Sequence record: NC_020077.1
Direction: 5' to 3' (one strand)
DNA: 64,000 nucleotides
Below, one piece after another: positions 181 to 61,838 of this stretch. Both the position numbers and the translations under genes were made by a program. Each line of letters starts with the position of its first letter. Positions within the stretch are counted from its first letter, which is position 1. The notes under the pieces are model-generated. The model was not told the DNA's origin and searched no databases. It saw nothing but the letters and a program-made list of their open reading frames with translations.

Positions 181-228
181 TTCTGTAAATCTACCAAATT
201 GTTATGACAATTCTATAATTTTACCAAA
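181..228. repeat. 48-bp tri-palindromic element, full copy
   Basis: TTCTGTAAATCTACCAAA-TTGTTATGACAA-TTCTATAATTTTACCAAA. Confidence 0.9.
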
Positions 229-327
229 GCCCGTTTTTCCCTTGGGTTTTTATGACTATAATGCTATGTTTATATACGATTTTACGTTTTTGGCTATGTA
301 GCTCATGGTAGAAAGTTTTATAAGCTT
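229..327 (+). promoter_or_regulatory. Repeated ~100-bp early-promoter header ending in BRE/TATA AGAAAGTTTTATAAG (310-324)
   Basis: Aligns with 3821-3922, 8792-8893 and 10579-10680 (CCCTTTTTCCCTT ... ATTTTACGT ... GCTCAT ... AGAAAGTTTTATAAG). Confidence 0.85.
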
Positions 328-360
328 CAATAACAAAGTATAAAATCGGTGGTTTAAAAT

Positions 361-1359
361 TTGTCACAAATAAAGATAAATAATAAGGCTGAACTTATTT
401 CGAAAATACAACAGGATATTGAAGAGCTAACTCAAGTTGAGGGTACTTTTGGAATATATCACAGAATTGACAGTATAGAGGTAGATCTTAAATTTGCACA
501 GAAAGAGATTGAGGAGAAAAGTTTTACATCGAAAAGTGTGCAAAGAGCAATAGAACTGATACTTAGCATTTTAGAAGGCGTCTACTATGATGAAATAAGA
601 GAGTATTCCGTAATACTAAGTAACATTTTTAATAAGGCTTTTGATAAGGAGAAAGGCATAATAGTAACAGAGAAGTTTGATGCTAAAAATACGTTTATGT
701 ATGTTTTAGAAATTTACGCAAATTTATGGGCAATGAGCGCATTATACTGGCTTATAAAAGACAGCAGAGATATAGATCTACTAGATGAACTAAAAATAAA
801 TTTAGATGGATCTATGATGAGAGCAGTTTATATACTTAATAATATTACGAATTACTATATACAGTATGACAAAATTAGCACAGACAAAAGGCAAGTCTTG
901 GTAGAAGTGCTAGGTAAGTATCTCTCGAAGTATTATGACATGGTAGAAAATTATCATGAGCATCTTGAGGGAGACATGGATAAGATTGCCGCGATGCTTA
1001 AGGCAAATGAGGATATTGCTAGAGGAACTTACAGCATACTAAGCGCAGCTATTGATGAAATGTGGGAGTATTATAATGTAGCAATCACAGCTGCTAATCA
1101 GGCTAGATTAATGTTAGAAAAAGAAGCCTTAAACGAAGAGGAGCAAAGGGTAGGTGAAGAAAAAGTTGATTTTAACGTGATTACACAAAACTTGAGAGAG
1201 GCATATATAGGGTTTAAGGCATTACAAGCGTTTTATGACGTACTGTGTAATGATACGTATGAGCTATGCCTCGATGATTTCCAAAAGCATCTTGATGAGG
1301 CCCTAAAGAACGCTAAAGAGGCCTTACACTTAATCGCAGAGCTTTGCATAACATTCTGA
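361..1359 (+). CDS. Hypothetical alpha-helical acidic protein (332 aa)
   Basis: Long ORF, TTG start after GGTGG RBS and early promoter. Confidence 0.8.
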
Positions 1360-1369
1360 AGAGGTAAAA

Positions 1370-2146
1370 GTGATGATAGTCAGACTAGTGTCATATTCAC
1401 CTGATGGTGAAAAGGTAGTAGCTATTGCGGCTAAAATGAGTAGGAGTAGGAAAGGTTGGGATTATCATGAAAAAGAAATGACTGATGAAGAGATTGAGAC
1501 ATGGATTAGGGATGCAATTCTACATGGGTATTGGTCTGTGTTAGAGCATTCAGTTTATACTTTTTCTATTGAGGGAATTTCTAGGGTTGCGTCTCATCAG
1601 CTTGTTAGGCATAGAATAGCCTCTTATACGCAAATGTCTCATAGGTTTGCTAGGCCAATAGATGAATATTATAAACCAATAATACCTACTAACATTAAAA
1701 AGAGGGATGTTCATGAGCTAGTTAACAAAGCTTACAATAATGCTTATGAAATTTATTATGAATTGTTGAAGAGCGGAATACCCGAAGAGGATGCACGTTA
1801 TGTTTTACCAAACGCTGTTAATACAAACATCGTAGTAACTATGAATGCTAGGGAATTATATAATTTCTTTTCCCTAAGGCTCTGTTCAAGAGCTCAATGG
1901 GAAATTAGAGCAATTGCATGGAGAATGCTAGAGGAAGTAAAGAAAGTTCACCCAAGATTATTTAGATATGCTGGGCCAAATTGCATAATACATGAGAATT
2001 TCATAAGAAATGAGTATATAACTTTAGATGATGTGCTTAAAAATCACAATATAGAGTTTATATCTCAAAGATGTATTGAAGGAGTTAATAGGGATGGAAT
2101 TATAAAATGCATCATTAACTCACGTGGAGTTATTGACTCGAGGTGA
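1370..2146 (+). CDS. thyX: FAD-dependent thymidylate synthase ThyX
   Basis: SVLEH and [17 protein letters not shown] signature; AQWEIR C-terminal motif. Confidence 0.97.
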
Positions 2147-2165
2147 AGTGATGAAAACATATTTA

Positions 2166-2205
2166 CGAATTTCGAACTTGTGCTATATACAGGGACTTCG
2201 AACTT
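2166..2205 (+). repeat. TTCGAA-rich 40-bp repeat core, copy 1
   Basis: CGAATTTCGAACTTGTGCTATATACAGGGACTTCGAACTT; 38/40 identical to 27275-27314 and 37/40 to the reverse complement of 48730-48769. Confidence 0.9.
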
Positions 2206-2261
2206 TTATTGCTAAAATTTTCCCTTTCTTAAATCTCATGAGGACGAGAAAAATTCGTGAC

Positions 2262-2309
2262 GGTAGCAAATTTGCAGAAATGTCATGCCAGTTCTACAAT
2301 TTTACCAAA
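2262..2309. repeat. 48-bp tri-palindromic element, full copy
   Basis: GGTAGCAAATTTGCAGAA-ATGTCATGCCAG-TTCTACAATTTTACCAAA. Confidence 0.8.
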
Positions 2310-2377
2310 TCCCCCTTTTCCCCCTTTTTAAGTCTAGATAAGTCTAAAAGGGAAAAGATGAATAGAGGTAAGAAGAG

Positions 2378-3253
2378 ATGGCAGACACAATGAAGATCGT
2401 TTTAGGACTTTCTGATAACAGAGTGAAGTTATGGGAGTTAGGTGTGCCATTAATGATTAATCAGTTGGTGTGGGACAGTGTAGAATGGGAAAATGAAACG
2501 TGGGTAGATTCTGGTGGCTATCAAATAATGGTTAAAAAAATGCAGATTAGTGTAGATGCCGTATTGGATAAATACAAGAGGCTTGATGCAGACTATTACA
2601 TTAGCCTCGATATACCTGCAACACCTTGCGAAAAGCCTTCAGAGCTTAATTTCAAGCATTTTGAGTACCTATACACGAGACTGGATAAGAATATAATACC
2701 AGTCATTCACGCTTATGATGTTGAAAGTATTAAAAAGGCTATTGATTTCTACTCTCAATATACGGATTATATCGCATTTGGTGGGATAGTTCCACCATCT
2801 CTTAATAAGGTAGCTAGCCAAAAGCTAGCAGTTGCAATGTACCGCCTTGTTAGGAAAGAATGGAAGGGTAAAATTCACGTTTTAGGTGCTGGTTCTCCTT
2901 TCATGAGAAAGGTTTTTTATGATGCTGATAGTGTTGATACATCAACTTATAGAGTAAAGGCAATACATGGTATGGTGTTATTGCCTGGAAAAGGAGAAAG
3001 GTATGTTGGAGAGAGAAAAATAAGTTGGGGGGCTAGACGAATTAGTGAAGATGAACTTGAATCGCTAAAGGCTTTTCTAGAGAAAACTCACTATCCATTT
3101 CCTATTAGGTTTGATAATTGGATGGATAGATCACTTGTTAACGCATGGGTTTTGTTACACAGTGAGTATGAGGAAGATAATCCTCTTATCAGATATGCAC
3201 ACAACATAACAGACCCAGAGGCTGAGATAAATGAGTTATGTAGAAAGCTGTGA
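2378..3253 (+). CDS. tRNA-guanine transglycosylase superfamily protein (DpdA-like candidate)
   Basis: WVDSGGYQ, SLDIP, IAFGG, IHVLGAG and DSVDTST motifs of the TGT barrel; no PUA domain or Zn-binding CxCxxC. Confidence 0.85.
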   Translation: MADTMKIVLGLSDNRVKLWELGVPLMINQLVWDSVEWENETWVDSGGYQIMVKKMQISVDAVLDKYKRLDADYYISLDIPATPCEKPSELNFKHFEYLYTRLDKNIIPVIHAYDVESIKKAIDFYSQYTDYIAFGGIVPPSLNKVASQKLAVAMYRLVRKEWKGKIHVLGAGSPFMRKVFYDADSVDTSTYRVKAIHGMVLLPGKGERYVGERKISWGARRISEDELESLKAFLEKTHYPFPIRFDNWMDRSLVNAWVLLHSEYEEDNPLIRYAHNITDPEAEINELCRKL

Positions 3254-3788
3254 ACACTTAGAGAAATATCTTGGCTCAAATAATGAACCAATAATAAAAA
3301 AGCCCGGCTTTGACCCATTCCAACACCCTGTCGTAAGGAAATGGCATGAGTACTTTCTCAATAACTGGCATTCCAAAAAAGAAATAGCGCTTTTACTGCC
3401 CTGCACATCAGTTAAGCCTTATAATAGGTCAGCTACTCATAAATTAGCATACTCGTTATTGAGAAAGTATAAACTTGAGGATAAGGTTCAGGTTTACTCT
3501 GTCTCCGAGCCGATGTTGTTAGTCCCTAGAGAGTTAGAGAACTGTTACCCTTTCAATTCTTATGATTATCCTCCTTCTTTAATGACTGAAGAAGAAAAAC
3601 AAGAGTTCATCAGCCTACTTTCCATTGCACTCTCTCATGTCCACAATATCCATAAGAGAATAATCGCAGTTTTGCCTAAACATCATTACAAGATAGTTTA
3701 TGAGGCTTCTAAAAACATCCCAATCGAACTTTATCCTTATGGCAAATTAGCTTTTAAAACGATAGCAAATGTTATAATGAAGATATGA
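3231..3788 (+). CDS. DUF5591 / archaeosine synthase (ArcS)-like domain protein
   Basis: ALLLPCTSVKPYNRSATH (PCxxxKPY motif), SEPMLLVPRELE, YDYPP; overlaps the TGT-like gene by 23 bp. Confidence 0.8.
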   Translation: MSYVESCEHLEKYLGSNNEPIIKKPGFDPFQHPVVRKWHEYFLNNWHSKKEIALLLPCTSVKPYNRSATHKLAYSLLRKYKLEDKVQVYSVSEPMLLVPRELENCYPFNSYDYPPSLMTEEEKQEFISLLSIALSHVHNIHKRIIAVLPKHHYKIVYEASKNIPIELYPYGKLAFKTIANVIMKI

Positions 3789-3802
3789 ACAACTATAGAC
3801 AA

Positions 3803-3922
3803 TTCACCAATTTTACCAAAGCCCCTTTTTTCCCTTGTGTCTTTTCTTACTACCGTTTATGAAGTTACGTTATTTTACGTGTTTGGTTATGAAGCTCATT
3901 ATAGAAAGTTTTATAAGTTTAA
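3803..3922 (+). promoter_or_regulatory. 18-bp palindrome half element plus early-promoter header
   Basis: TTCACCAATTTTACCAAA (3803-3820), header, AGAAAGTTTTATAAG at 3903-3917. Confidence 0.85.
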
Positions 3923-3949
3923 AGTGTAACAGAGATAATCGGTGGGAAA

Positions 3950-4270
3950 ATGTCAGAGGTGGAGCGCCTAAAACCTGTAACCTTTAAGTGTGAAGATAGT
4001 CTGTTTTTAAAGCTAGAGGAAGAGGCTAAAAAAGCTAACGTCGCTAAAACTAAAATTATAAGAGAGGCATTAGCGAAGCTTTTACAACATGACATTGAGG
4101 AAATAAGGGAGTTAAGTAGAGGAACTCCTCCCTATTCAGGCAAGCGTGTAGTTTCAATAAGGCTTCCCGAAAGCCTTAATACTCAGTTAGAGATTGCTGC
4201 AGAAAAAATAAGGTCTAACAAGAGTGACCTGATAAGGGCTGCTTTAGCAGCCTACTTCAGGTTAGTGTAA
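3950..4270 (+). CDS. Tandem two-RHH DNA-binding protein
   Basis: KPVTFKCEDSLFLKLEEEAKK...IIREAL and VVSIRLPESLNTQL...DLIRAAL ribbon-helix-helix patterns. Confidence 0.85.
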   Translation: MSEVERLKPVTFKCEDSLFLKLEEEAKKANVAKTKIIREALAKLLQHDIEEIRELSRGTPPYSGKRVVSIRLPESLNTQLEIAAEKIRSNKSDLIRAALAAYFRLV

Positions 4271-4272
4271 GG

Positions 4273-5343: not shown

Positions 5344-5345
5344 GG

Positions 5346-6440: not shown

Positions 6441-6451
6441 GGGTGATATAA

Positions 6452-7663: not shown

Positions 7664-7678
7664 GTTTTTCGCCAACTT

Positions 7679-8758
7679 TTGGTGATGAAGATGGCATATT
7701 TAGACTTTTATATGCATAATTCTTTATTAAATAAAGTAAAGGAAGAAGCAAAACGGCTTAATGTAAGTGACAAACTTCTGATGAAGGCCGCTATTATTGC
7801 ATTTGTTGAAAATCCTACCGATTCTATAAAACCATTACCAGATGGTAATCATAACAACGGAAAGGTAGTAAGAGTTATCATAAAGCTTTCAGAAGACATT
7901 ATCAATAAATTTATACTTTATGCGAAGTCCAAAAATGCTACAATTAAAGAAGTTGCTGAAAATGCGATAGCTAACTTCCTTACTCTAGGCGATGAGCAGA
8001 AAAGGCCCTATATAGAAGAAGAAAAAAGGCAGTTAGCCGAAGCTAGGAAAAAATTAGCTGAACTTAATAAAAAGGAAATGCAAAAGAAGTCTTCAACACA
8101 GCTGCAAGCTGATATAGGGCCAAACAGCCTTATTATAATGTCCTTTAAATGCAATCCTAACTTATACAAACTACTTGAAAATGAGGCAATGAAAAGACGC
8201 GTAGCAGTTGCAGAGCTCATAAGAAATGCTGTTGCGGATTTTCTACAGAAATATGGGAATAATTATGATGAAATTATTAGATTATATTTTGCGGTCGATC
8301 TCTTCTTTTCTAAAAATAATACGAGTAATATTGGTACTAAAATATGTATCGTAAAAATGCCAGCATATATGGCATCAGAATTAGAAAAAATTGCAAGACA
8401 AACATCAGTCACAAAAAGTGGTGTTATTCGCCTTGCGATTATGAACCATTTGAATTTGTTAAATGGAAGTGTCACAGAACAACAGAAGATTACACAAAAT
8501 GAGGCAGCAAATGATCCGCCTAATGATCCGCCACAACAAAATAATAAAGATGAACTCTTACGAGCAAGTCGTTTTATTAGTGTGTCTTTACCAGAACCAC
8601 TTTATAATTTACTAAAGAAATATGTAATGCTTAAGTATAATGTTAATAAGGAAAGAGAGATTAAGTCTATAGTCAGTAACATTATAGCAGAAGTATTGGC
8701 ACAGTGGTCACAAGAGCATTTCTCCAAAAGCGGCGATGTTGAAACTCGTGTTCGGTAA
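7679..8758 (+). CDS. Multi-RHH protein lacking the C-terminal domain of its paralogs
   Basis: Follows paralog 6452 to SGDVET, then ends RVR* just before a palindrome element. Confidence 0.8.
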   Translation: MVMKMAYLDFYMHNSLLNKVKEEAKRLNVSDKLLMKAAIIAFVENPTDSIKPLPDGNHNNGKVVRVIIKLSEDIINKFILYAKSKNATIKEVAENAIANFLTLGDEQKRPYIEEEKRQLAEARKKLAELNKKEMQKKSSTQLQADIGPNSLIIMSFKCNPNLYKLLENEAMKRRVAVAELIRNAVADFLQKYGNNYDEIIRLYFAVDLFFSKNNTSNIGTKICIVKMPAYMASELEKIARQTSVTKSGVIRLAIMNHLNLLNGSVTEQQKITQNEAANDPPNDPPQQNNKDELLRASRFISVSLPEPLYNLLKKYVMLKYNVNKEREIKSIVSNIIAEVLAQWSQEHFSKSGDVETRVR

Positions 8759-8761
8759 ACC

Positions 8762-8893
8762 TTGTCATGTCAGTTCTGCAAATTTACCAAAGTCCCTTTT
8801 TCCCCTTGTGTCTTTTCTTACTACCGTTTATGATTTTGCGTAATTTTACGTATTTGACTATGAAGCTCATGGTAGAAAGTTTTATAAGCTTAA
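8762..8893 (+). promoter_or_regulatory. Partial palindrome element plus early-promoter header
   Basis: TTGTCATGTCAG-TTCTGCAAATTTACCAAA (8762-8791); AGAAAGTTTTATAAG at 8874-8888. Confidence 0.85.
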
Positions 8894-10530: not shown

Positions 10531-10680
10531 TTTGGTAAATCTACAAAATTATCATGGCAATTTGGTAATTTTGGTGAAGTCCCTTTTTTCCCTTATGTTT
10601 TTGTGAGTATCGTGTTAAATTAACATGTGATTTTACGTTTTTCACTATTGAGTTCATGATAGAAAGTTTTATAAGCTTAA
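10531..10680 (+). promoter_or_regulatory. Full 48-bp palindrome element (10531-10578) plus early-promoter header
   Basis: TTTGGTAAATCTACAAAA-TTATCATGGCAA-TTTGGTAATTTTGGTGAA; AGAAAGTTTTATAAG at 10661-10675. Confidence 0.85.
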
Positions 10681-16109: not shown

Positions 16110-16157
16110 TTCTACCAATTTACCAAATTGTAATGACAATTCTGTAGATTTGGTGAA
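16110..16157. repeat. 48-bp tri-palindromic element, full copy
   Basis: TTCTACCAATTTACCAAA-TTGTAATGACAA-TTCTGTAGATTTGGTGAA, 5 bp after the dcd stop. Confidence 0.9.
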
Positions 16158-27131: not shown

Positions 27132-27228
27132 TTCACTCTCCTCTCTCTAAAAATAATAAAACAAAGTTAAAAAGAGTCACTCAGAAGGCTTTTTGGCAAA
27201 TTTACCAAAAACTGTCTGAGTGTTCATA

Positions 27229-27362
27229 ATTCTCCAGATTTGTAGAAGGGTTTTTCCTCATGTAGTCTTACTTTCGAATTTCGAACTTTTGCTATATACT
27301 GGGACTTCGAACTTGTAACGTTAAAAATTGGGCGTCAAATGGTTTCACAAGTTTGAAAAAAA
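27229..27362 (+). repeat. ~135-bp intergenic repeat (18-mer palindrome plus TTCGAA core), copy 2
   Basis: Colinear with the reverse complement of 48681-48814. Confidence 0.9.
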
Positions 27363-27413
27363 TACAGAACATTTTTTCGTTAAATTTACCAAATTCTTAC
27401 TAGTAAAACATAT

Positions 27414-27461
27414 TTTGGTAAATCTAGCGAATTATCATGACAATTCTGTAGATTTGGAGAA
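27414..27461. repeat. 48-bp tri-palindromic element, full copy
   Basis: TTTGGTAAATCTAGCGAA-TTATCATGACAA-TTCTGTAGATTTGGAGAA; extra 18-mers at 27192, 27230, 27376. Confidence 0.9.
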
Positions 27462-34732: not shown

Positions 34733-35356
34733 TTATTTGAAATGTGCCTTGATGAATTCCAACACACCCCCTACAACTTTAAGCATCTTAAGCGAATAAT
34801 CAAAAAAGTACTCTGCATGTAGAGCTTCTTCAAGGTTTTTCTCGTTCACATTAAATAGTGTCATTATCTCTTGATAAAGCATCGTGCCCCTAATACGTAG
34901 TAAAAGGGCCTTAGTCTTCTCGATTATTACCTGGTATGCCTTCAGTTTTGTCAAGTATTCAGACTTCTCCTTGTAAACTGTTTCCAGGTGTGATAAGATG
35001 TTCGAGGCTTCATTAACAACTGCCTCAATGTTATAATCACTCGTATCTACAGTATCAATCACTAAATTTGTAATTGCTGGATTATTAGAAAATAAGGCAA
35101 CACATAATTTTATAACATGAGCGCGCTGTACAGCTTTGTCATTAGTGCTCTCAAGAACCTTCTTAGTTTTTTCAAATAATGGCCTTAAATGTGGGTATGT
35201 TGATAAGAATAGTAATAGGCTGTTGTAAACTGATATTGGGTGAGAAGATATTGTTAAGCTATTACACATGTTTAGTGCGAGAGAGATAGCGTCTTTTCGT
35301 TTATCAAGATCTTGTGGTGCTGCTTCAGGCAAAAGATAATCTAGTTCGTCACTCAT
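34733..35356 (-). CDS. Hypothetical helical protein
   Basis: 207-aa ORF, translationally coupled to the ParB-like gene. Confidence 0.7.
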   Translation of the reverse strand: MSDELDYLLPEAAPQDLDKRKDAISLALNMCNSLTISSHPISVYNSLLLFLSTYPHLRPLFEKTKKVLESTNDKAVQRAHVIKLCVALFSNNPAITNLVIDTVDTSDYNIEAVVNEASNILSHLETVYKEKSEYLTKLKAYQVIIEKTKALLLRIRGTMLYQEIMTLFNVNEKNLEEALHAEYFFDYSLKMLKVVGGVLEFIKAHFK

Positions 35357-36336
35357 CTTTGATCATCATCATGACTTCTAATATTCTTCAAAACTTTCTT
35401 AGGTAATTCAGCTTCAAACACAGGCAGAAGTGCATCATAAAGTTGTTTTGGCAATACTACAATAGCGCCGTTCTTTGCCCTTTCTTCAATGCTACTAATG
35501 TAATCATCAAGCTTTGTGATATTAATCAATCTTGTTCTTTTCTTAAACTTCTTTACCTTTTCACGCAACTTATTTTCCATTAGTTCCTTCACAGTTTTCA
35601 TATATTCGTCTTTATCCTTGATCTGTGAGAGAAGTAGTTTATATTTAGAAAAGAAAGATGGGCCATTCTGCAGAAGTAAGTCTACATCTTCTTTTGTTAA
35701 CCTCTCGCGTACGGGTATAGGGATTGCTTTGGCCATCGCTGAAACGTTAGTAGGGTAGAGGTTGTGGTATTTCAGATACTCGCTTAGCTTTCTGAAGAGA
35801 ACTGGATATTTTTTGAAGTGTTTTATTATTAAATCAAAAGTTCTTACGCTTAAGTCAACATTAGTCTCTTCAAGTAGCTCTAGAGTGTTATGATATGAGA
35901 GATTCACCCTTTCTCTCAACTCTTGTAATTTAGAATAGTATTCAAGCAATTGGCCCCTATCTATTGCCTTCCTAACGAAATTGACTGCGTAAGCTATTAG
36001 TTCTAGCTGATCTTCTGAACCATACACTATTCTGACTGGAATCATTACTTTATCCCATTTTCCATCATAAAGCTCACGTAATGCATAATATCTAACGTAA
36101 CCATCAATCAATAGAAAACGATCTTTGCTTGTCTTATCTTCTGTTACGATGAGGGGTTGAAGAAGTGATTCGTTCTGTATGCTTTCTTTCATTTTTTGGA
36201 TTTCATCTTCTCTTCTCGGGAAAAGCGTTGCAAACTTAGGATGCTCAAAAATGTACGATAAGGGAACGTTTGTTGAAACTGTGTTAGAAAGTATGTTAAG
36301 CTCTCTGAGTTTATCTAGCAATTCTACTGTTGCCAC
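35353..36336 (-). CDS. ParB/Srx N-terminal domain protein
   Basis: SIQNESLLQPLIV...FLLIDGYVRYYAL...IPV pattern, then a helical domain. Confidence 0.8.
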   Translation of the reverse strand: MATVELLDKLRELNILSNTVSTNVPLSYIFEHPKFATLFPRREDEIQKMKESIQNESLLQPLIVTEDKTSKDRFLLIDGYVRYYALRELYDGKWDKVMIPVRIVYGSEDQLELIAYAVNFVRKAIDRGQLLEYYSKLQELRERVNLSYHNTLELLEETNVDLSVRTFDLIIKHFKKYPVLFRKLSEYLKYHNLYPTNVSAMAKAIPIPVRERLTKEDVDLLLQNGPSFFSKYKLLLSQIKDKDEYMKTVKELMENKLREKVKKFKKRTRLINITKLDDYISSIEERAKNGAIVVLPKQLYDALLPVFEAELPKKVLKNIRSHDDDQR

Positions 36337-40277: not shown

Positions 40278-40325
40278 TTCTCCAAAACTGGAGAATTGTA
40301 ATGACAGTTCTGCAAATTTGGTAAA
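40278..40325. repeat. 48-bp tri-palindromic element, full copy
   Basis: TTCTCCAAAACTGGAGAA-TTGTAATGACAG-TTCTGCAAATTTGGTAAA. Confidence 0.9.
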
Positions 40326-45328: not shown

Positions 45329-45679
45329 TTATTGTGAAGAAGTTTGAGAAGGTTTTTCTATTACCTCCTTGTAAAAAACATTTAACCACTTGTCTACATA
45401 AAGTGCTATAGCTGTTTTTATGATGATGGCTGGCGTAACGTTTCTCCTCTTTGCTAGCTCTTCTATTGCTTCGACCAGATTGCGATCTAATTTCATAACC
45501 TTTATATGCCTTTTTCCTGGCTTAATGTAATACTTGTCGATTGGGTTTTGCAGGTACTCTATCAATGCCTCATTTATTAGCTGTGCCTGATCCTTCTTAA
45601 GAAAGTTTGACACTTTTTGGAGGCTGTCAAATAGGTGATTATCTAAGGGAAATCTAACTTGAACTCTCTGCCCTGCCAT
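45329..45679 (-). CDS. Tandem two-RHH DNA-binding protein
   Basis: RVQVRFPLDNHLFDSL...LINEAL and IKVMKLDRNLVEAI...IIKTAI. Confidence 0.8.
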   Translation of the reverse strand: MAGQRVQVRFPLDNHLFDSLQKVSNFLKKDQAQLINEALIEYLQNPIDKYYIKPGKRHIKVMKLDRNLVEAIEELAKRRNVTPAIIIKTAIALYVDKWLNVFYKEVIEKPSQTSSQ

Positions 45680-45731: not shown

Positions 45732-46283
45732 CTACGAATTTACGATACGCGCTAAGTAATCTTCCGCCTCCTTCGTTTGAACATAAGTCAGAATGTGGCG
45801 CAAGCTCTTATGCCCAGTTATTTTTGCAACCACTTCAGCCGGTAATCCATCTTTTATTGCTTTTGTTATAAAAGCATAACGGAAAGAATGCGTATTTACA
45901 CCATAACGCCTTTTACAAAACATCTTAACTGCTGCAATCATTTTCCTTTCACTTTTTGTAAGGATGATGGAATAATACTTTTTGTAAGTGATTATTTTGG
46001 GGATGATGATTTTTCTTTCATTCCCGCCTTTTTCAGCCTTTAAGATGATTGTTCTTTCTTTGCCACCAACCTCTACAAATTGGTAGAAAGCCTTAACTGC
46101 TTCGCCTATTCGTGTACCATTTGTAAGTTGTGTAAGTAAAATTGCAACGTAAATCTCTTTGTCAAAATCTTCAGCGGAGTTTTGCGAGAATTGCTTATAG
46201 TCTTTTTCTAAGGTTTTTCTCATCTTGTCAAAGTCAACTCCCTTGTCCCACTTGAATATTGTCTTCCCTTCTTCTATTGCCAC
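45732..46283 (-). CDS. Minimal tyrosine recombinase (catalytic domain only)
   Basis: GTRIGEA (R), KAEKGG (K), THSFRY (HxxR), TGHKS (H), LTYV (Y); 183 aa. Confidence 0.88.
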   Translation of the reverse strand: MAIEEGKTIFKWDKGVDFDKMRKTLEKDYKQFSQNSAEDFDKEIYVAILLTQLTNGTRIGEAVKAFYQFVEVGGKERTIILKAEKGGNERKIIIPKIITYKKYYSIILTKSERKMIAAVKMFCKRRYGVNTHSFRYAFITKAIKDGLPAEVVAKITGHKSLRHILTYVQTKEAEDYLARIVNS

Positions 46284-46427
46284 ACTTTCATTTTAGATTA
46301 AGCAGTTAAAAATATTCTTTCTGTAAAATTGGAGAAGTAAAGGGAACTAAAAGAGGTCAAAAGTAACGTGTTTATGACGTTGCTGATTATAGAAAGTTTT
46401 AAATATTAGAAAAACAGAACCTAAAAT

Positions 46428-46580: not shown

Positions 46581-46762
46581 AGAAGCATTCATAACTTATG
46601 TATACATAAGTAAGGTAAATCTTTTTTTTCCAAAATTACCGCTCTTATCTTCTTTCTATAAAATTGTAGAAACAAAGGGCAGTGAAAGACGTAAAAAATG
46701 ACGAGTTCATAACGTTAGTGATTATAGAAAGTTTTAAATACAAGAAAAACAGATCCTAACAT

Positions 46763-48682: not shown

Positions 48683-48814
48683 TTTTTTCGAACTTGTGAA
48701 ACTGCTTAACGCTTTATTTTTTACGTCATAAGTTCGAAGTTCCTGTATATAGCAGAAGTTCGAAGTTCGAAAGTGAAAGTAGATGAGGAAAAACCTTTGG
48801 TAAATTTACAGAAG
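48681..48814 (-). repeat. ~135-bp intergenic repeat, copy 3 (inverted)
   Basis: Reverse complement aligns with 27229-27362; includes 18-mer at 48796-48813. Confidence 0.9.
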
Positions 48815-48825
48815 TCATGACAAAT

Positions 48826-50076: not shown

Positions 50077-50460
50077 TTATTGGGATCTTATTACCTTTAT
50101 TACTTTTTCATTTTCATCATAGATAAATTTAGTAATATCTCCAGGCCTTACTCGAAAATGTATTAATAATTTTGCGGGTATCTTCAACCTATAATTTATG
50201 GAAACTATGGCAAAATCTTCAAACTCGAGTTGTAGTGGATTTTCTGCATTCTGTGAATCAACAGGCAACATCCTAGTTGGTGAGACTCTAGTATATGCTT
50301 TAACTAACCTTAGCATTGGTTCATTGCCATTTTTGACAACGCTCACTCTCATAATGTCGCCTAAAGCTATCGGGTAAACCTTCCTTATTGCTATTGGTAT
50401 CGTTACTACGTAATTCGTAGTAACTTTTGAATACGATTCGACTACCATTTTTTCCACCAT
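50077..50460 (-). CDS. Tandem AbrB/SpoVT-domain DNA-binding protein
   Basis: SKVTTNYVVTIPIAIRK...LGDIM and VSINYRLKIPAKLL...RPGDI; early-type promoter at 50493-50507. Confidence 0.75.
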   Translation of the reverse strand: MVEKMVVESYSKVTTNYVVTIPIAIRKVYPIALGDIMRVSVVKNGNEPMLRLVKAYTRVSPTRMLPVDSQNAENPLQLEFEDFAIVSINYRLKIPAKLLIHFRVRPGDITKFIYDENEKVIKVIRSQ

Positions 50461-53360: not shown

Positions 53361-53408
53361 TTCTCCAAATTGGTAGAATTGTAATGACAATTCTGTAAAT
53401 CTGGTGAA
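53361..53408. repeat. 48-bp tri-palindromic element, full copy
   Basis: TTCTCCAAATTGGTAGAA-TTGTAATGACAA-TTCTGTAAATCTGGTGAA, between divergent TATA boxes. Confidence 0.92.
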
Positions 53409-53448
53409 TTGCATAAATTCTTAAATATTTCTTAGTTGTTGTAATGAT

Positions 53449-53766
53449 ATGGAAGCTGAGATAGTTAAAGGATATAAGGATTTGGTGTTAGAGGCCCTGT
53501 TCTGGGCTTTGAAAAATATGTCTCGTGTAATCAACTATCAGGATGGGTGCCACGAATATTATGATAGAAATAAGGAGTGGTCACTTCAGATTTGTAAAAG
53601 CAGAAAAGAGGAAGTTAATGTCTTCATACACGATGGAAAAGTAATCGTACGTGTTGATGTCTATACATTAACTTACAAGGTTACAGAGATAGCGTTCGAT
53701 TTAATTGAAGATGCGATAGATGCTGTGTGGAGCGGAAAATATGTAACCACGAAAGATTTATCATGA
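53449..53766 (+). CDS. Hypothetical small protein
   Basis: 105-aa ORF with TATA at 53421. Confidence 0.7.
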   Translation: MEAEIVKGYKDLVLEALFWALKNMSRVINYQDGCHEYYDRNKEWSLQICKSRKEEVNVFIHDGKVIVRVDVYTLTYKVTEIAFDLIEDAIDAVWSGKYVTTKDLS

Positions 53767-53799
53767 TACTTATACAATTTTGTAGAAAAACCAGGAGGA

Positions 53800-54795: not shown

Positions 54796-54852
54796 TTCTT
54801 TTTGCTTAAATATGAATGGCTAAACAGAATTCTACAAATTTATAGAAGAAAA

Positions 54853-55746: not shown

Positions 55747-55889
55747 TTTGTAACTATTGTTAATCTTGTGCTTTATATTTATTTTTCGTATACAGTAGAA
55801 GGTCACATCCGTTCTGTAAATTTACAGAAGCTAGAAATAAGCAAGTTAAGACCAAAAAATTTTTAAGTTATAATTATAACCATTATTCA

Positions 55890-56027: not shown

Positions 56028-56160
56028 GGTGTTGGGCCTCAACCTTACGGTTCATTGTAGCAACTTGCCACTCCACGTGAGGGTCATGGGCCCCCTTCGA
56101 GCCCCAAGGCACGAGGCTCACATCTAATTTTTTAGCTATATTCCACGCTGCTATAACGTC
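55988..56160 (-). ncRNA. Putative omega-RNA of tnpB element 2
   Basis: Same conserved GC-rich 3' block; boundaries approximate. Confidence 0.6.
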
Positions 56161-57352: not shown

Positions 57353-57449
57353 ACAAGGCTAAGTTGTTCTACCAATTTATAGAAGCTAGAAATTATGCGG
57401 TAAAACAAAAAAGTTTTTAAACTATGTTTATAACAAATCATCATTAGAA

Positions 57450-57932: not shown

Positions 57933-58017
57933 CTTCTGTAAATTTGTAGAAGTCTGGTTTTTGTTTATATTTGTGTTGAGATAATAAAAGTAAACTGCGT
58001 TTGGTAAATTTGTAGAA
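57931..58017. repeat. Two 18-bp palindrome units
   Basis: GAC-TTCTGTAAATTTGTAGAA-GTC (57931-57954) and TTTGGTAAATTTGTAGAA (58000-58017). Confidence 0.85.
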
Positions 58018-58788
58018 AAGCTTGTTAGTTAGGTAGCTTACTGTAAGAGGTATGACGGTTTACTGTCTGAAAGTAAGCTGTTTAACTTTCGCCCGCACCC
58101 CCAAAAAGAGGGAGGGTGGTGTAAGAGGGGAGGTTCATTAGCAGCAACAATAAGTGTTTTTTTTTTTTTGTAGGCTTACAGCCTACAGCCTATATTATAT
58201 ATATAATAATTAGCTTTTATATAATACACTTATTATAATTAGCTAAGAACGCCCTTAACTCCCTCAGATTATTTCATATGCCTATTTAGCGCATTTAATT
58301 AAACGTCTGATCATTTCATATCTCCTTCTATTTTTGATCTCCTTAGTATTAACACTTCAAAGATCGTTTTCTGTCTCTCTTAATTCAATACTTCTTACTA
58401 CACATTTTTATACACCACAGAATTATCAATTGAGTACTCCTTTTTTCTTCTGCTTAATTCAGTATCTTTCACTTTCACAATATTTAGATGGCATATAAAG
58501 GAGGTGGTAAGAAGTCTCATTCAGCATGAGAAAAATTGCGATTTCATATCCCCCCTACGCCTTCTTAACTTATTTCATATCCCTTTTGTGTATAGTTGTA
58601 ATATTAATATAAGCTACTCTCTTTTTACTGTCACTTAAGGGATATGAATATATTATTACTTAACAAAAATTTTTCTTACTTCTCTTACCTTTTACATTTT
58701 TCCCTTAAGCTTTTAGGTTGGTAGAATATTTATTACAGTCATGAGAAAAATTATCGATAAAATTAAATGTTTTTTTATTTCACGTTAA
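58018..58788. other. ORF-free AT-rich region, candidate replication origin
   Basis: Longest non-coding stretch; ATTTCATAT x4 plus one inverted near-copy, CATGAGAAAAATT x2, T13 tract, AT-only run. Confidence 0.5.
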
Positions 58789-59553: not shown

Positions 59554-60547
59554 TTTCTTCTAATATATTGTCTTCTTCTCCTTTATATTTCTTTTTCTCT
59601 TCTTCAAGCAATAACTCAATGTAACTATTCCTTACCAATGTATATTGGTCATACGCTGCTTTAGGCAGTTTTACGTTAACTAGGCCTGTGTGGGCCCTCA
59701 CTCTCCCCGCATCTACTACTTTATCACCCTCAACCTTTATCTCATTATAAATTATGTAGTCTTTCTTAAGCCAGTTCTTTATTGCAGTTCTCGTGTATAG
59801 TTTCCATTGCGCGTAGTTATCTGGATCTAGGTTATTCTGAACTAAAAGCTTCACAAAATTATAATCCTTCCTTCTATTATCACGCGTTAAATACAGATAA
59901 TAGATCCCTTTAATTGTCCTCAGCATTTTGTGCAAGTTTTGTTCTGTTGTTGGCATCGTTATTATTATACTACTCACTCGAGGCCTTAGAAGTGTTAATA
60001 AATCATTCGCAACCTGATATCTGTTTCGCCTTGACCAATAAGTGTGAGAGCCAAAGAACACTTGCGCATCATCTAACAAAATGACCGGAACCCTCAGTCC
60101 GTTTCTTTCTAAAAACAAAACGAAATCACGTAATTGTAATGGATCGATTATGTTAAAATAGAGCGCAAATTGGAAATTAAGCAGAGGATCATCAGGCCAA
60201 TATCCATAAATTCCTGCCAAGATTTGTAATGCCATGCTGCTTTTTCCAGCGCCTTGCTCACCTTCTATCACGAAGATTGAAAAGCTTGTCAAATCTTTTG
60301 TAAAATCTCTCGTTATTTTCATAATGAAGGGGTTAATGGTAGGAATCAAAACTTCTTGTCCACTCTCGTCTTTAAGCCAAAGCGGCATATCGAGGAACGG
60401 GTTTTTGTCTCTTTTTAGCTTCTCCTCTATCACTTCTTTTAATATTACCTTGAATTGTTTTCTAAACGCATTTTCATAATCAACTGTTAATAACGGTTTA
60501 CTAGGATCCTCATTTTGAATAATAAAATCGCCAATTCTTTTTATCAT
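59516..60547 (-). CDS. P-loop NTPase (Zot/FtsK-like or AAA)
   Basis: Walker A VIEGEQGAGKSS, Walker B VILLDDAQ; start 60547 preferred over 60721. Confidence 0.8.
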   Translation of the reverse strand: MIKRIGDFIIQNEDPSKPLLTVDYENAFRKQFKVILKEVIEEKLKRDKNPFLDMPLWLKDESGQEVLIPTINPFIMKITRDFTKDLTSFSIFVIEGEQGAGKSSMALQILAGIYGYWPDDPLLNFQFALYFNIIDPLQLRDFVLFLERNGLRVPVILLDDAQVFFGSHTYWSRRNRYQVANDLLTLLRPRVSSIIITMPTTEQNLHKMLRTIKGIYYLYLTRDNRRKDYNFVKLLVQNNLDPDNYAQWKLYTRTAIKNWLKKDYIIYNEIKVEGDKVVDAGRVRAHTGLVNVKLPKAAYDQYTLVRNSYIELLLEEEKKKYKGEEDNILEENDDAATEEVSET

Positions 60548-60601
60548 GCTATTCTTTATTTTAGCTACAGAATTTATAAAAGTAATATCGAATAGTAATA
60601 T

Positions 60602-60916
60602 ATGTCTCTTCCAAGGATTCCTAAAGCAAGCATTGTCACAGACAGAATTAAGAATGAAGACAAAGATGAACAAAAAACTACAGAAAACAAAAAAGATGAG
60701 CAAAAGGTAGATTGCACACAAGTAGTTGCACAGTATGTTACGCTTTTAAATAATTTATTAAGCGATATGCAAGAACTTCTAAACCTTTTAGCAGATCGTT
60801 CTCTTAAAGCAAAGCCAAACTTCAAATGCCTCGATTACGATTTCTACCCTATTAACCCCGTGTTGACCCGTTACATTGTTAAGGGAATAAAAGAAGAGTG
60901 TAAGAATTTAAAATGA
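60602..60916 (+). CDS. Hypothetical protein
   Basis: 104-aa ORF. Confidence 0.65.
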   Translation: MSLPRIPKASIVTDRIKNEDKDEQKTTENKKDEQKVDCTQVVAQYVTLLNNLLSDMQELLNLLADRSLKAKPNFKCLDYDFYPINPVLTRYIVKGIKEECKNLK

Positions 60917-61117
60917 AGTTTTGAAGAGTTCAGAAATCCTCTGTTTTCTACCATCATAATAGTAAATAATTCCATCATCGCCAAGTTCCTCAATTCTCTT
61001 GACCTCAAAACTGTAAAGCCTGATAGTGTTCAGATCAAGTTCGTCCTCACTTTCTGAGTTAGTTATCTTTATGTAATCACCTTCCTTCTCTATCAAATAT
61101 TTACCTATTTTGATCAT
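60908..61117 (-). CDS. Small acidic protein
   Basis: 69-aa ORF downstream of the coiled-coil gene. Confidence 0.6.
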   Translation of the reverse strand: MIKIGKYLIEKEGDYIKITNSESEDELDLNTIRLYSFEVKRIEELGDDGIIYYYDGRKQRISELFKTSF

Positions 61118-61128
61118 CTTCTCGCCCT

Positions 61129-61749
61129 TCAGCCTGACATTTCTGCTGAAAGTATTTCCATTTCAACAGACATCTCACTTCTTTTACGAAATACTTCTAT
61201 TGCCTGTTCTAGCAATTCTAATCTTTGTGAGGCATTCTGTTTTGCTTCTTCCATTATATTAATTAATTCTTTTGTATTATCATTAATCCTTATAAGCAGT
61301 TCATTTAGCTTCTCCATTTCATTTTTTTGATCTTCTATATCATCCATTGCTTCTTTGATTTTATTTTTGTTAATACGTTTAGAATTAGCGGCATTTTGTA
61401 CTATTCTCATTTCCGCATCTAAAGTTACTTTTGCTAGTTTTGTTGATGTTTCTATAAATTCCAGTTCCATCTTATCCATTTGTTTTAGCATTTCTATTAT
61501 CCCATTTATTTTATTGGTTATCTCAGCTTCTGGTACCTCTTCTTCATTCAATCTTTTATGGAGGTCTGTTACACTATCAAAAATTTTTACGGTTATGTCA
61601 TCTATTTCAGCGCTAAGTCTATCGACTTTTTTTGATAACCTATTAAGCTCTTTAAGTTCTCTATCACTGAAAGTACCCTTTAAGTTTGCGAAATTTGTGT
61701 TATCTTCTTCATCATATACTTTATTTTCTTCAAGATCTTTTTCTTTCAT
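61129..61749 (-). CDS. Acidic coiled-coil protein
   Basis: Heptad-rich 206-aa ORF. Confidence 0.75.
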   Translation of the reverse strand: MKEKDLEENKVYDEEDNTNFANLKGTFSDRELKELNRLSKKVDRLSAEIDDITVKIFDSVTDLHKRLNEEEVPEAEITNKINGIIEMLKQMDKMELEFIETSTKLAKVTLDAEMRIVQNAANSKRINKNKIKEAMDDIEDQKNEMEKLNELLIRINDNTKELINIMEEAKQNASQRLELLEQAIEVFRKRSEMSVEMEILSAEMSG

Positions 61750-61790
61750 ATTAATCTATTTCTTTATTTGTCATTTTATAAATTTTTAGC

Positions 61791-61838
61791 TTCTTCAAAT
61801 TTACCAAATTATCATTGCAATTCTACCAATTGGTAGAA
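61791..61838. repeat. 48-bp tri-palindromic element, full copy
   Basis: TTCTTCAAATTTACCAAA-TTATCATTGCAA-TTCTACCAATTGGTAGAA (last 18-mer is a perfect palindrome). Confidence 0.92.

Follow-up and report, generated by a model that had tools for sequence, protein, structure and literature searches.

What do the short palindromes scattered through the gene gaps of Sulfolobus virus STSV2, an archaeal virus, do, and why do they mark cassette borders? We analyzed a 64,000-nucleotide window of this genome (positions 12108-76107 of record JQ287645); sites are given below in window coordinates and carry no strand. A sequence-only reading had described the palindromes as borders of gene cassettes and had proposed either an operator or a tyrosine-recombinase site. 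The cassette borders held up, the recombinase core site did not, and the operator alternative accounted better for the data. The sites are most likely docking sites for a virus-encoded DNA-binding protein. With slightly less than even confidence, we favor dispersed binding sites resembling KorB operators or phage stoperators, with recombination as a by-product.

The motif and its distribution in the genome

The motif unit is an 18-bp dyad (TTYKVYAAATTTRBMRAA), present in about 30 copies in STSV2, with eight pairs of units forming a 48-bp element. On re-reading, the eight full copies (181, 2262, 10531, 16110, 27414, 40278, 53361, and 61791) all consisted of 18+12+18 bp, and the reported invariance of the 12-bp spacing was confirmed in 8/8 copies within the window. 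A symmetrized PWM was trained on the 16 units of these copies only. It gave 28 matches of at least 15 bits in the window against 0.43 expected from Markov-2 shuffles, and 13 single units outside the training set scored 16.8-23.2 bits. Scanning with TTYNNYAAATTTRNNRAA and allowing at most one mismatch yielded 30 matches against 1.96 expected, a number that none of 100 shuffles reached.

At a threshold of 9 bits or more, non-coding DNA held 33 matches against approximately 0.8 expected, an enrichment of at least 40-fold, whereas coding DNA held 10 against approximately 7.6, which is background. The statement that nearly all copies are intergenic was borne out. All 28 strong matches (at least 15 bits) were non-coding once two doubtful ORFs and one mis-called start were discounted: the four 'coding' copies lie in STSV2_14, in STSV2_63, or in the first 54 nt of the annotated STSV2_62. 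STSV2_14 and STSV2_63 are doubtful ORFs with no STSV1 homologue, and the STSV1 orthologue of STSV2_62 has its start codon further downstream. The perfect palindromes at 55812 and 61821 and the quoted distances to stop codons were also correct. Two of the listed partial or single units need correction: the unit at 46567 is weak (9.8 bits), and the one at 8762 is a spacer plus the second unit (U2).

The description 'genome-wide' was overstated: beyond the window, the 12-kb arm that carries the predicted early genes (record positions 1-12107) has one copy only. This arm contains nine large intergenic gaps; its lone unit, at record position 224, precedes gene 01 and falls in the putative origin region. 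An early or anti-defence role has been predicted for the genes of the arm, along with a regulatory sequence of their own (PMC11065993 supplement). The near-absence of units there agrees with a regulon of a temporal class.

Units at gene and cassette borders

Many copies began 1-21 bp past a stop codon. The STSV1 units near an annotated TATA box were all 7-91 bp upstream of it and never overlapped it; with this variation, no single promoter geometry applies. Some copies lay in convergent gaps without an expected promoter and others in divergent gaps, the coat-protein promoter and several others had no units, and no clear functional class divided genes with units from genes without. The variable TATA distance, the convergent-gap copies, and the promoters without units count against a binding-site reading.

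The full element at 181..228 (20.3 + 16.4 bits) lies between genes 11 and 12, 12 bp past the gene 11 stop, and is missing from STSV1, which has ORF14 there instead. The element at 2262..2309 (14.6 + 17.4 bits) falls within the doubtful STSV2_14, in the interval from gene 13 to gene 15. It is directly followed by a variable cassette slot, occupied by ORF17 in STSV1 and by two ORFs in STSV4; the STSV2 alignment blocks against each of these two genomes stop 10-14 bp past the element. A single unit at 3803..3820 (17.0 bits) stands between genes 16 and 17, 14 bp past the stop and upstream of a conserved promoter module. At 8751..8791, a truncated element comprises a half unit with the gene 21 stop codon, the 12-bp spacer, and U2 (22.2 bits). 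PWM matches placed full elements at 10531..10578 (genes 23/24, 3 bp past the stop codon) and 16110..16157 (genes 30/31, 5 bp past the dUTPase stop codon), the latter with a three-unit version in STSV3.

Genes 34 and 35 diverge from a gap in which the PWM and comparison with STSV1 identified a unit-20 bp-unit pair (27192..27247), the left border of a 184-bp segment missing in STSV1. A three-unit array at 27376..27461 (unit, 20 bp, unit, 12 bp, unit) includes the full element 27414-27461 and ends 39 bp before the gene 35 ATG; its STSV1 counterpart has a TATA box 13 bp downstream of the last unit. The element at 40278..40325, identical in STSV1, starts 21 bp past the gene 51 stop and adjoins the left end of IS605-orfB copy A. 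Around the integrase gene, single units at 46319..46336 (35 bp ahead of the integrase start codon) and 46654..46671 (91 bp upstream of gene 55) open the first and second copies of a 335-bp tandem duplication, with the weak unit at 46567 between them. A unit-like 18-mer within the integrase ORF (46071..46088, 13.8 bits) encodes FYQFVE; it scores 19.0 bits in STSV1, one synonymous change apart, and may be a chance match.

The gap on which genes 58 and 59 converge, not expected to contain a promoter, has a unit with a 10-bp spacer remnant (48796..48823); in STSV1 the whole gap is present a second time, between ORF46 and ORF47. The gene-63 cassette, missing in STSV1, is bordered on the left by the full element at 53361..53408, upstream of gene 62, and on the right by a degenerate spacer plus U2 at 53758..53787 (11.9 bits), which aligns to STSV1 66612-66641. 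The unit at 54830..54847, 5 bp past the gene 65 stop, borders an N4-methylase cassette missing in STSV3. A 1.5-kb insert with IS605-orfB copy B runs from the perfect palindromic unit at 55812..55829, a U1/U2 hybrid of the full element that STSV1 has at that locus, to the unit at 57367..57384, 65 bp upstream of gene 67. At 57934..58017 come two units separated by 66 bp, with the same spacing in STSV1 and STSV3; the first stands 1 bp past the gene 67 stop, where an 856-bp non-coding region has its edge. The full element at 61791..61838, found with the PWM where genes 72 and 73 diverge, carries a 613-bp insert in STSV3 and STSV4.

Comparison of STSV1-4 supported the description of copies as cassette borders: 6/10 indels had a junction within 2 bp of a unit (P ~0.006), and one STSV3 locus had been converted to the arrangement of another. 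The alignments indicate that gene cassettes were gained and lost at units during STSV history. A dedicated recombination site would also give this coincidence. Such a site would be cut and rejoined by gp54 in the central AATTGTCATGACAATT, so that circular cassettes are integrated and excised, with gp54 perhaps targeted by the adjacent ribbon-helix-helix protein gp53 bound to the 18-bp units. If true, this would be an integron-like system in an archaeal virus. As had been noted, this bicaudavirus does encode a small tyrosine recombinase and ribbon-helix-helix proteins. gp54 (45732..46283, minus strand) is a 183-aa protein with the catalytic domain only; its Pfam Phage_integrase match (E 3e-9) spans profile positions 5-170 of 172, and all catalytic residues are kept (R58, H131xxR134, H157, Y166). 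gp53 (45329..45679, minus strand; RHH_1 E 3.4e-6) is co-oriented with and downstream of the integrase and adjoins it also in L204 and L205. The integrase-gp53 pair with a unit just upstream is kept in STSV1-4 and L204. Inserts are flanked by directly repeated units, as after circle integration; the N4-methylase gene, gene 63, and the slot after element 2262 behave as cassettes; and the center, the best-conserved part of the full element, allows a reading as a 6-bp core with short arms on either side.

The junctions themselves speak against this mechanism. Depending on the event, the duplicated segment was a single unit, the spacer with U2, or half a unit with 9 bp of unique flanking sequence, leaving no fixed crossover point, and despite the palindromic nature of the sites no inversions distinguish the four genomes. 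Together these observations suggest homology-driven exchange. In addition, single units are more numerous than full elements, the thirteen single units lack the core, a 7-4-7 unit is abnormal for a tyrosine recombinase, the most variable genome arm is nearly empty of the motif, SMV1 has a 42%-identical integrase yet no such motif, and thirty active sites would keep deleting essential genes. We therefore find the core-site reading unsupported and consider dedicated recombination, although the main rival reading, unlikely.

Candidate binding proteins

As binder of the unit, the best candidate is gp47 (35353..36336, minus strand), a ParB/Noc/KorB-like protein by Pfam, profile, and Foldseek comparison. 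Its ParB_N match (E 1.4e-4) was below the cut-off, and 7/9 family members match ParB_N. A profile search against the PDB returned Noc (E 1.2e-12), with Spo0J and KorB also matched by profile and predicted fold; Foldseek matches were Noc, ParB, pNOB8 ParB, and KorB, including KorB structures 8qa8 and 8qa9. Noc, ParB, Spo0J, and KorB bind palindromes of 13-16 bp at many dispersed sites. gp47 is restricted to the lineage with the motif, and no homologue was found in SMV1 or ATV. Box II reads GYVRYYA instead of GERRxRA, a degenerate CTP-binding box; the structure model reaches only a moderate pLDDT of 73 and contains a linker of low confidence; and no partner of the ParA type turned up, the neighboring ATPase being AAA-type. 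These three features count against gp47 as the binder. gp53 and gp60 (50077..50460, minus strand; AbrB/MazE fold, MazE_antitoxin E 1.1e-5) are alternative candidates.

A ParB/Noc-family protein also raises the possibility that the units are parS-like loading sites for gp47 that serve segregation or compaction of the non-integrating episome and have no transcription role. In carrier-state cells, STSV viruses are maintained as episomes, prophage N15 has dispersed centromere sites and Bacillus dispersed Noc sites, and the units are excluded from one arm as Noc sites are from the terminus. However, a centromere would require neither strict confinement to gaps nor placement upstream of TATA boxes, and the lack of a ParA-type partner and the degenerate box II weigh against it as well. 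We regard this function alone as improbable.

Half-site variation and likeness to known systems

The two halves of a unit matched at 1.83 of positions 3-6, against 1.85 for randomly paired halves. Halves are therefore no more alike than random pairs, and the dyad symmetry exists at the consensus level only, which is what two protein subunits would give if each recognized a degenerate half-site. Between orthologous STSV1 and STSV2 units, identity was 93% at consensus positions and 74% at variable positions, showing purifying selection on the consensus. Downstream of many copies there is a C-rich stretch as well as five or six consecutive T; with the position of copies 1-21 bp past a stop, this would suit 3'-end hairpins acting as terminators or stabilizers. 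The halves show no compensatory covariation, however; RNA folding at 75 C predicted 10/16 full-element strands to be completely unfolded and the rest to reach at most -3.6 kcal/mol; and no transcript should cross the copies in divergent gaps. RNA-level signals are thus very improbable, and the independent halves and melted hairpins point to a dimeric protein site. Least probable of all are small MITE- or REP-like elements spread by a transposase such as one of the IS200/IS605 family: in three places the distance from an IS605-orfB left end to a unit is 15-30 bp, and STSV1 has an additional copy, at a new location, of a 200-bp gap with an element, but there are no target-site duplications, no clean presence or absence of the 48-mer alone, and no hairpin covariation, STSV2 has orfB without orfA, and the motif is missing from all host and other genomes searched.

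Independent half-sites, purifying selection, and placement upstream of TATA boxes thus fit an operator better than a tyrosine-recombinase site. We infer that a virus-encoded dimeric DNA-binding protein, for which gp47 is the best candidate, would bind the approximately 30 dyads that lie between transcription units in the non-early portion of the genome. Unit centers in the 48-bp form keep a fixed 30-bp register in 8/8 pairs. The conserved 12-bp palindrome would hold two sites 30 bp apart, about three helical turns, a register at which one complex could be built from several dimers or include a second protein. The 12-mer did not exceed chance frequency without flanking units, and one STSV1 copy has a 10-bp spacer; unit pairs with a 20-bp spacer form a second recurrent arrangement, and registers of 38 bp and 66 bp are found again across viruses. 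A binding site does not account for the conserved 12-mer. The bound protein would most likely be a global repressor, a roadblock, or a boundary separating neighboring transcription units, and may also condense or partition the episome. Since the units are the only sequence common to many intergenic gaps, homologous recombination or template switching between them could lead to cassette gain, loss, and conversion as a by-product.

RK2 KorB at its 12 operators (OB) and the mycobacteriophage L5 repressor at its stoperators act as proposed here. As in RK2, a replicon of approximately 60-76 kb carries a dozen or more intergenic palindromes at variable promoter distances and encodes its own ParB-family protein. 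Unlike the 13-bp OB, the STSV unit has 18 bp with a degenerate middle and occurs in composite 48-bp and three-unit arrays; and unlike KorB, the candidate gp47 has a degenerate box II, no ParA/KorA partner was seen, and the host is an archaeon. L5 stoperators and the CIR sites of the Streptomyces phage phiC31 number twenty to thirty repressor sites, mostly in short intergenic gaps, including promoter-distant ones where the bound protein blocks elongation. The STSV sites are likewise many, dispersed, and mostly in gaps; L5 sites are asymmetric and orientation-dependent, whereas STSV units are dyads with a candidate binder only, and STSV is not known to be a classical temperate virus. Noc sites and parS share the many dispersed palindromes and the excluded region, and Noc/ParB are the best gp47 matches, but those sites are not confined to intergenic DNA and STSV binding and function are putative. 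In a motif-bearing Sulfolobales extrachromosomal element, short conserved dispersed motifs also coincide with variable-region borders; its architecture and lineage differ, no PLSDB plasmid has similarity to the STSV element, and the STSV junctions point to homology-driven exchange. Integron attC sites are imperfect palindromes bordering single-gene cassettes, with a tyrosine recombinase encoded nearby. Unlike STSV halves, which do not covary, attC works as a folded single strand of conserved structure; STSV cassettes are scattered rather than arrayed beside attI, and gp54 lacks the IntI architecture.

STSV1-4 and a Metallosphaera-MAG relative carry the motif, which did not occur outside this STSV lineage: it was absent from SMV1, the first 50 kb of ATV, IMG/VR, metagenomes, and 185,000 genomes and plasmids, hosts included. 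SMV1 and ATV each have a dispersed palindrome of their own, which in SMV1 mostly precedes a start codon by 0-56 bp. Dispersed dyads that differ by lineage thus seem to be a regulatory feature common to viruses of this group.

A palindromic unit between the genes of STSV2

The window matched positions 12108-76107 of the STSV2 record JQ287645.1 at 100% identity (window coordinate = record coordinate - 12107). This virus of the Sulfolobales is spindle-shaped with a single tail and has a genome of 76,107 bp. Its relatives in a phage collection were STSV1, with about 87% DNA identity, and STSV3 and STSV4, both fragmentary. As a laboratory model virus of Sulfolobus islandicus REY15A, STSV2 is employed in work on CRISPR adaptation and virus-induced cell gigantism.

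We analyzed an 18-bp dyad, hereafter the unit, which occurs singly and, in eight full elements of 48 bp, as a pair (U1 and U2) around a 12-bp spacer. All copies were found where the sequence-only reading had placed them. A symmetrised position weight matrix (PWM), trained only on the 16 units of the eight full elements, found 28 window matches scoring 15 bits or more, compared to 0.43 expected from Markov-2 shuffles, and the 13 single units outside the training set scored 16.8-23.2 bits. The consensus TTYNNYAAATTTRNNRAA with at most one mismatch was matched 30 times (1.96 expected), a count that none of 100 shuffles came near. With STSV2_14, STSV2_63, and the first 54 nt of STSV2_62, all of which overlap elements, set aside, all 28 strong units were located in non-coding DNA, which amounts to 9.5% of the sequence. 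Coding DNA yielded 10 weak matches of at least 9 bits, compared to about 7.6 expected. This is background only, and the equally good copies in coding DNA that the sequence-only reading had listed among the findings against its proposal were thus not observed.

STSV2_14 (window 2151-2393) is a doubtful ORF that covers a full element and has no STSV1 homologue. The annotated start of STSV2_62 crosses an element (window 53362-53414), and STSV1 ORF64 is shorter by 31 codons. STSV2_63 (window 53449-53766) is a lineage-specific cassette gene with no STSV1 homologue and no match in a Pfam search. Within the integrase ORF, a unit-like 18-mer (window 46071-46088; 13.8 bits) lies in frame and encodes FYQFVE; it scores 19.0 bits in STSV1 through one synonymous change, is also found in STSV3, STSV4, and the ENA contig L205, and could reflect chance and shared ancestry. 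Within the giant gene 31 (window 17407-17433 and 17725-17742), weak unit-like matches of the form TGCAGYNGATTTAGCAAA (9-14 bits) are repeated at positions shared with STSV1 and STSV3; these probably represent repeated coding sequence and not sites.

The 12-bp spacing, claimed earlier to be invariant, was present in all eight pairs, with the consensus TTGTCATGACAA. The spacer 12-mer did not occur apart from flanking units beyond chance and units frequently stood alone, indicating that the unit is primary and the 12-mer a specialised spacer. Units also recurred at other spacings. Two units with 20 bp between them (27192 and 27230) were kept in STSV3 only, since the segment is missing from STSV1, while a three-unit array with gaps of 20 and 12 bp (27376-27461) and a pair of units 66 bp apart (57934 and 58000) were kept in both STSV1 and STSV3. 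Higher-order complexes are suggested by these recurring spacings and by the 30-bp register, which is fixed in the 48-bp form.

In the symmetrised consensus, TT-Y-K-V-Y-AAA-TTT-R-B-M-R-AA, the outer TT/AA and the central AAATTT were nearly invariant. At the variable positions, the two halves of a unit agreed at 1.83 positions compared to 1.85 for random pairing, and three units were fully symmetric compared to 3.6 for randomly paired halves. The halves therefore agree no better than random, and the symmetry resides in the consensus rather than in single copies. Judged from sequence, this is the signature expected when each subunit of a dimeric protein reads one degenerate half-site, and it disfavours a base-paired structure. 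Orthologous units of STSV1 and STSV2 were 93% identical at consensus positions and 74% identical at variable positions, and entire half-sites were frequently exchanged. The window gave no matches to Rfam or in a tRNA scan. A resemblance of the unit-spacer junctions to a Sulfolobus CRISPR repeat was set aside, since it extends over 11 nt and no significance could be demonstrated for it.

Units were found in tandem, divergent, and convergent gaps alike. In tandem and convergent gaps they began 1-21 bp past the upstream stop codon, and the gene 21 stop codon lies inside a half unit; downstream of several copies there is a C-rich stretch followed by five or six T. The STSV1 units near annotated TATA boxes were all 7-91 bp upstream of them, with no overlap. 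Four gaps (11/12, 16/17, 21/22, and 23/24, named by their flanking genes) had a conserved promoter module in common, about 130 bp long and situated downstream of the element, and the contexts of the remaining copies were unrelated. The promoter core TAGAAAGTTTTATAAG of this module lies upstream of genes 12, 17, 22, 24, and 28 (window 309-324, 3902-3917, 8873-8888, 10660-10675, and 14438-14453), and is also present at 46390 and 46725. The conserved block ACGTNTTTGNNTATGNAGCTCAT immediately upstream of the core may be the site of another regulator.

Units were present in 14 or 15 of the roughly 18 window gaps that measure 130 bp or more; the unit-free gaps were those of the coat-protein region promoters, 42/43, and 57/58. 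Beyond the window, the record has a 12-kb arm with genes 01-10, nine large gaps, and a total of 4.2 kb that is non-coding; it held one unit, in the putative origin region. Seven genes of this arm are predicted to be early or anti-defence genes that possess a conserved regulatory sequence of their own (Bhoobalan-Chitty et al. 2024, PMC11065993 supplement). The description of the element as genome-wide was therefore too strong, and the motif marks the non-early part of the STSV2 genome. An 856-bp non-coding region (window 57933-58788), kept in STSV1 and bordered by two units, is rich in AT and contains both a TATATTATATATATAATAAT stretch and a T11 run. It adjoins genes 68 and 69, the latter called a DnaA-like initiator in RefSeq, and had no Rfam match; it may serve as a replication origin or encode an RNA.

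Distribution among viruses and other genomes

STSV1 contained 27 units, most of them in orthologous places, and units were also present in the STSV3 and STSV4 contigs. A contig from a Metallosphaera metagenome-assembled genome (MAG), whose integrase protein is 82% identical, carried four units: a convergent gap held three of them, and the fourth was 60 bp upstream of the integrase. STSV-like viral contigs were binned in Metallosphaera, Micrarchaeaceae, and Thermoplasmata MAGs (L204, L206, and L207 from the Metallosphaera MAGs GCA_038874975.1 and GCA_038875075.1; P0014 and P0015), with homologues of gp47, a ParB-like protein, 78-96% identical and an integrase 82% identical; the Metallosphaera contig L204 additionally encodes an Hjc resolvase and a STIV B116-like protein. 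A distant gp47 homologue lies on a contig of 2.7 kb (P0017), too short for a palindrome survey.

Outside the STSV lineage, an element was taken as genuine when a match to the central pattern was accompanied by flanking units. Scans for exact matches to the pattern in IMG/VR, JGI metagenomes, and GTDB genomes recovered only STSV1 and STSV2, the other matches being chance singles whose flanks lacked units, and a coat-protein search of IMG/VR likewise recovered these two viruses alone. In 185,579 species-representative genomes, the full-element pattern had nine matches, all bacterial and one in each genome, and no genuine element. The 48-mer matched nothing above chance on PLSDB plasmids, archaeal plasmids included. 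These two results lend no support to an identical or related sequence on the Sulfolobus conjugative plasmids, with whose recombination motif the element had been compared. No units beyond chance were found in SMV1 or in the first 50 kb of ATV, two other large spindle-shaped viruses. On these scans, the element belongs to the STSV lineage.

SMV1 (HG322870) has a dispersed palindrome of its own, AAACA(GC/TA)TGTTT, with 28 exact AAACAKMTGTTT matches compared to 0.06 expected (for example at 2377, 5761, 12073, 19060, 21383, 22403, and 48442); about half of the AAACAKMTGTTT copies are 0-56 bp upstream of start codons. ATV (AJ888457) has eight 16-bp palindromes centred on ACAGCTGT, of the AAGAACAGCTGTTCTT type, at 1040, 5243, 7454, 7532, 16773, 39418, 42743, and 45019, which are related to the SMV1 motif and unlike the STSV unit. 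It thus seems that every lineage of these large spindle-shaped viruses possesses a dispersed dyad of its own, and such lineage-specific dyads in SMV1, ATV, and STSV favour a regulatory or architectural reading of these motifs generally.

Insertions, deletions, and recombination at the units

Alignment of STSV2 with STSV1, STSV3, and STSV4 revealed ten insertions or deletions inside the window. Six of the ten had at least one junction no more than 2 bp from a unit (binomial P about 0.006, with units forming 10% of the non-coding DNA and a per-event chance of about 0.2), which bears out the earlier claim that the element marks cassette borders; three more had a junction 7-14 bp from a unit. In the 34/35 gap, a 184-bp segment lies between two direct copies of the unit, and STSV1 has one unit and lacks the segment. 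The gene 63 cassette is inserted into the full element that precedes gene 62, and the spacer and U2 are repeated on the far side of the cassette. The N4-methylase gene 65 has units on both sides in STSV1 and STSV2, where STSV3 has one full element instead. A 1.5-kb insert with copy B of an IS605-orfB element interrupts an element that is full in STSV1, and the 72/73 element carries a 613-bp insert in STSV3 and STSV4. The slot directly after the element at 2262 is empty in STSV2 and holds ORF17 in STSV1 and two ORFs in STSV4. The 30/31 element of STSV3 is swapped for a three-unit form whose 20-bp spacer is identical to that of the 34/35 gap; to judge from this identity, the swap is an ectopic conversion between copies.

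Other rearrangements were observed in the same genomes. The 54/55 gap contains a 335-bp tandem duplication (window 46312-46646 and 46647-46981; one copy in STSV1), which doubles a unit and the gene 55 promoter. In STSV1 (48391-48590), the convergent ORF60/ORF61 gap has been copied, stop to stop with its unit, between the stops of the likewise convergent ORF46 and ORF47. In the copied gap, the element is more complete and has a 10-bp spacer, and a remnant of an IS left end is present. Two copies of the IS605 element with orfB only (window 38902-40247 and 56005-57346) are 84.8% identical, and STSV1 53622-53860 is a remnant of copy A with an internal deletion. The STSV4 contig with a third IS copy ends 38 bp upstream of orfB, and an OrfB protein search of genome contigs gave no match. 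The left-end or promoter sequence GGTAAAAAAGTAAAGTTTATTAATTTTCAC of the IS lies 15-30 bp from a unit at three places, which suggests that unit ends are targeted or that the sequence spread through recombination at units. Gene 16 (window 3231-3788) encodes a DUF5591 domain (E 8e-20) in the region where RefSeq names a queuine tRNA-ribosyltransferase gene; this region and three DNA methylases hint at extensive viral DNA modification.

The main rival to a binding-site function is a dedicated recombination system, in which gp54, perhaps with the ribbon-helix-helix (RHH) protein gp53, acts at the elements. The gp54 protein (183 aa) is a tyrosine recombinase consisting of the catalytic domain alone (Pfam Phage_integrase, E 3e-9) with all catalytic residues in place (R58, H131xxR134, H157, and Y166). 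The gp54 start has a unit 35 bp upstream, gp53 is encoded directly downstream, and the gp54-gp53 pair is kept in relatives. Such a system is compatible with the junctions, and AATTGTCATGACAATT, at the centre of the full element, lends itself to a reading as short arms around TCATGA. The 13 single units, however, have a 7-4-7 structure that cannot be so read, and single units are in excess. The repeated segment at the junctions also varied: it was the unit in the 34/35 gap and the gene 65 cassette, the spacer and U2 at gene 63, and half a unit with 9 bp of unique flank (GCTAGAAAT) at the IS-B insert, and an exchange at a fixed position duplicating exactly one site was not seen. No inversions were found among the four genomes despite the palindromic sites; the alignment blocks of STSV2 with STSV1, STSV3, and STSV4 in the window were all colinear, and the single short inverted match was in the repeat-rich origin region beyond the window. 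Given these varying segments and absent inversions, only one unit (in the origin region) in the most variable arm of the genome, and an SMV1 integrase of the same family without the motif, the junction anatomy is unlike site-specific recombination, and the suggestion that the centre is a tyrosine-recombinase site was not supported. We regard a dedicated system as unlikely. Short repeats that are the sole homology among many gaps would gather homology-driven exchanges anyway.

A more specific and less probable proposal is an integron-like exchange, in which gp53 on the units would guide the minimal gp54 to recombine at the central 16-bp palindrome, so that single genes would be captured, lost, or moved between co-infecting viruses. 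The N4-methylase gene, gene 63, and the slot after thyX would be among its cassettes.

Candidate binding proteins and proposed function

Profile and fold matches gave gp47 the architecture of the ParB family, an N-terminal ParB/Srx domain with a helical DNA-binding domain. Pfam ParB_N fell just under the cut-off for gp47 itself and matched seven of nine family members, and the family profile matched Noc (E 1.2e-12), ParB (E 2.7e-9), and Spo0J in the PDB. An AlphaFold2 model (pLDDT 73, pTM 0.44; residues 147-180 of low confidence) retrieved Noc, ParB, the N-domain of pNOB8 ParB, and KorB with Foldseek over 200-270 columns (E 5e-7 to 3e-4). The CTP-binding box II, GERRxRA, is not preserved: gp47 has GYVRYYA, and the family alignment is invariant only at G79 and R82. 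A weak LAGLIDADG-like similarity of gp47 (E 0.04) was unsupported by the fold search. No homologues of gp47 or gp53 were detected in SMV1 or ATV by tblastn, and both proteins therefore match the phyletic pattern of the motif. The ParB-like gp47, the RHH protein gp53, and gp60 (AbrB/MazE fold) are candidate binders of the unit, none of them assignable to the site. The aCcr1 box (9 bp, AGTATTA-like) is another sequence than the unit.

Our tentative preference, somewhat short of probable, is that the units are binding sites of a virus-encoded dimeric protein. They share the features of dispersed operators, a dyad with independent half-sites and conserved positions, and copies confined to the gaps between transcription units. 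Such a dimer would act as a global regulator from these gaps. The units lie upstream of TATA boxes or after stops, with some in promoterless gaps, and leave out the predicted early arm. A role in partition or condensation might exist alongside regulation, a ParB-family protein would be the natural candidate binder, and the turnover of cassettes at units would be a by-product of repeated short homology. The closest behaviour is that of KorB, the L5 repressor, and the phiC31 repressor, which act globally from dispersed palindromes. KorB of RK2 has 12 operators at variable distances from promoters, the L5 repressor acts at stoperators, and the phiC31 repressor acts at conserved inverted repeats.

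That the units are purely a centromere seems as improbable as the integron-like exchange. Gene 48, the neighbour of the ParB-like gp47, encodes an AAA-type ATPase, and the scanned subset of STSV2 ORFs gave no match to a ParA ATPase. It is very unlikely that they are RNA hairpins acting as terminators: several copies do have T runs downstream, but copies also occur in divergent gaps, and at 75 °C, roughly the growth temperature of the host, 10 of the 16 full-element strands were predicted to be unfolded, the remainder reaching at most -3.6 kcal/mol. A mobile element of the REP/BIME or MITE kind is the least credible alternative, as the halves do not covary, the indels lack target-site duplications, and the IS605 copies are orfB only.

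Dispersed dyad-symmetric binding sites in viral or plasmid genomes are already known. The accessible literature (on Sulfolobales CRISPR, aCcr1, the ATPase, haloarchaeal viruses, Borgs, and anti-defence) contained no description of the motif. As far as that literature shows, the 18+12+18 composite, the three-unit arrays, the confinement to one lineage, and the hot spots of indels and conversion are new, although Xiang 2005 or Erdmann 2014 may mention the motif.

The element bears on several aspects of STSV2 biology. To our knowledge, next to nothing is known about regulation, episome maintenance, and diversification of the 76-kb genome, and a 30-copy cis element with few candidate binders, namely the ParB/KorB-like, RHH, and AbrB-like proteins and the minimal tyrosine recombinase, offers a directly testable handle on all three. 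Binding by the ParB-like protein would make the units a global system of the KorB or Noc type in an archaeal virus; action of the recombinase would make them a cassette-exchange system new for archaeal viruses. Under either reading, the element accounts for where STSV genomes diverge. The palindromes that SMV1 and ATV possess suggest that large spindle-shaped viruses have a general, as yet unexplored level of genome organisation.
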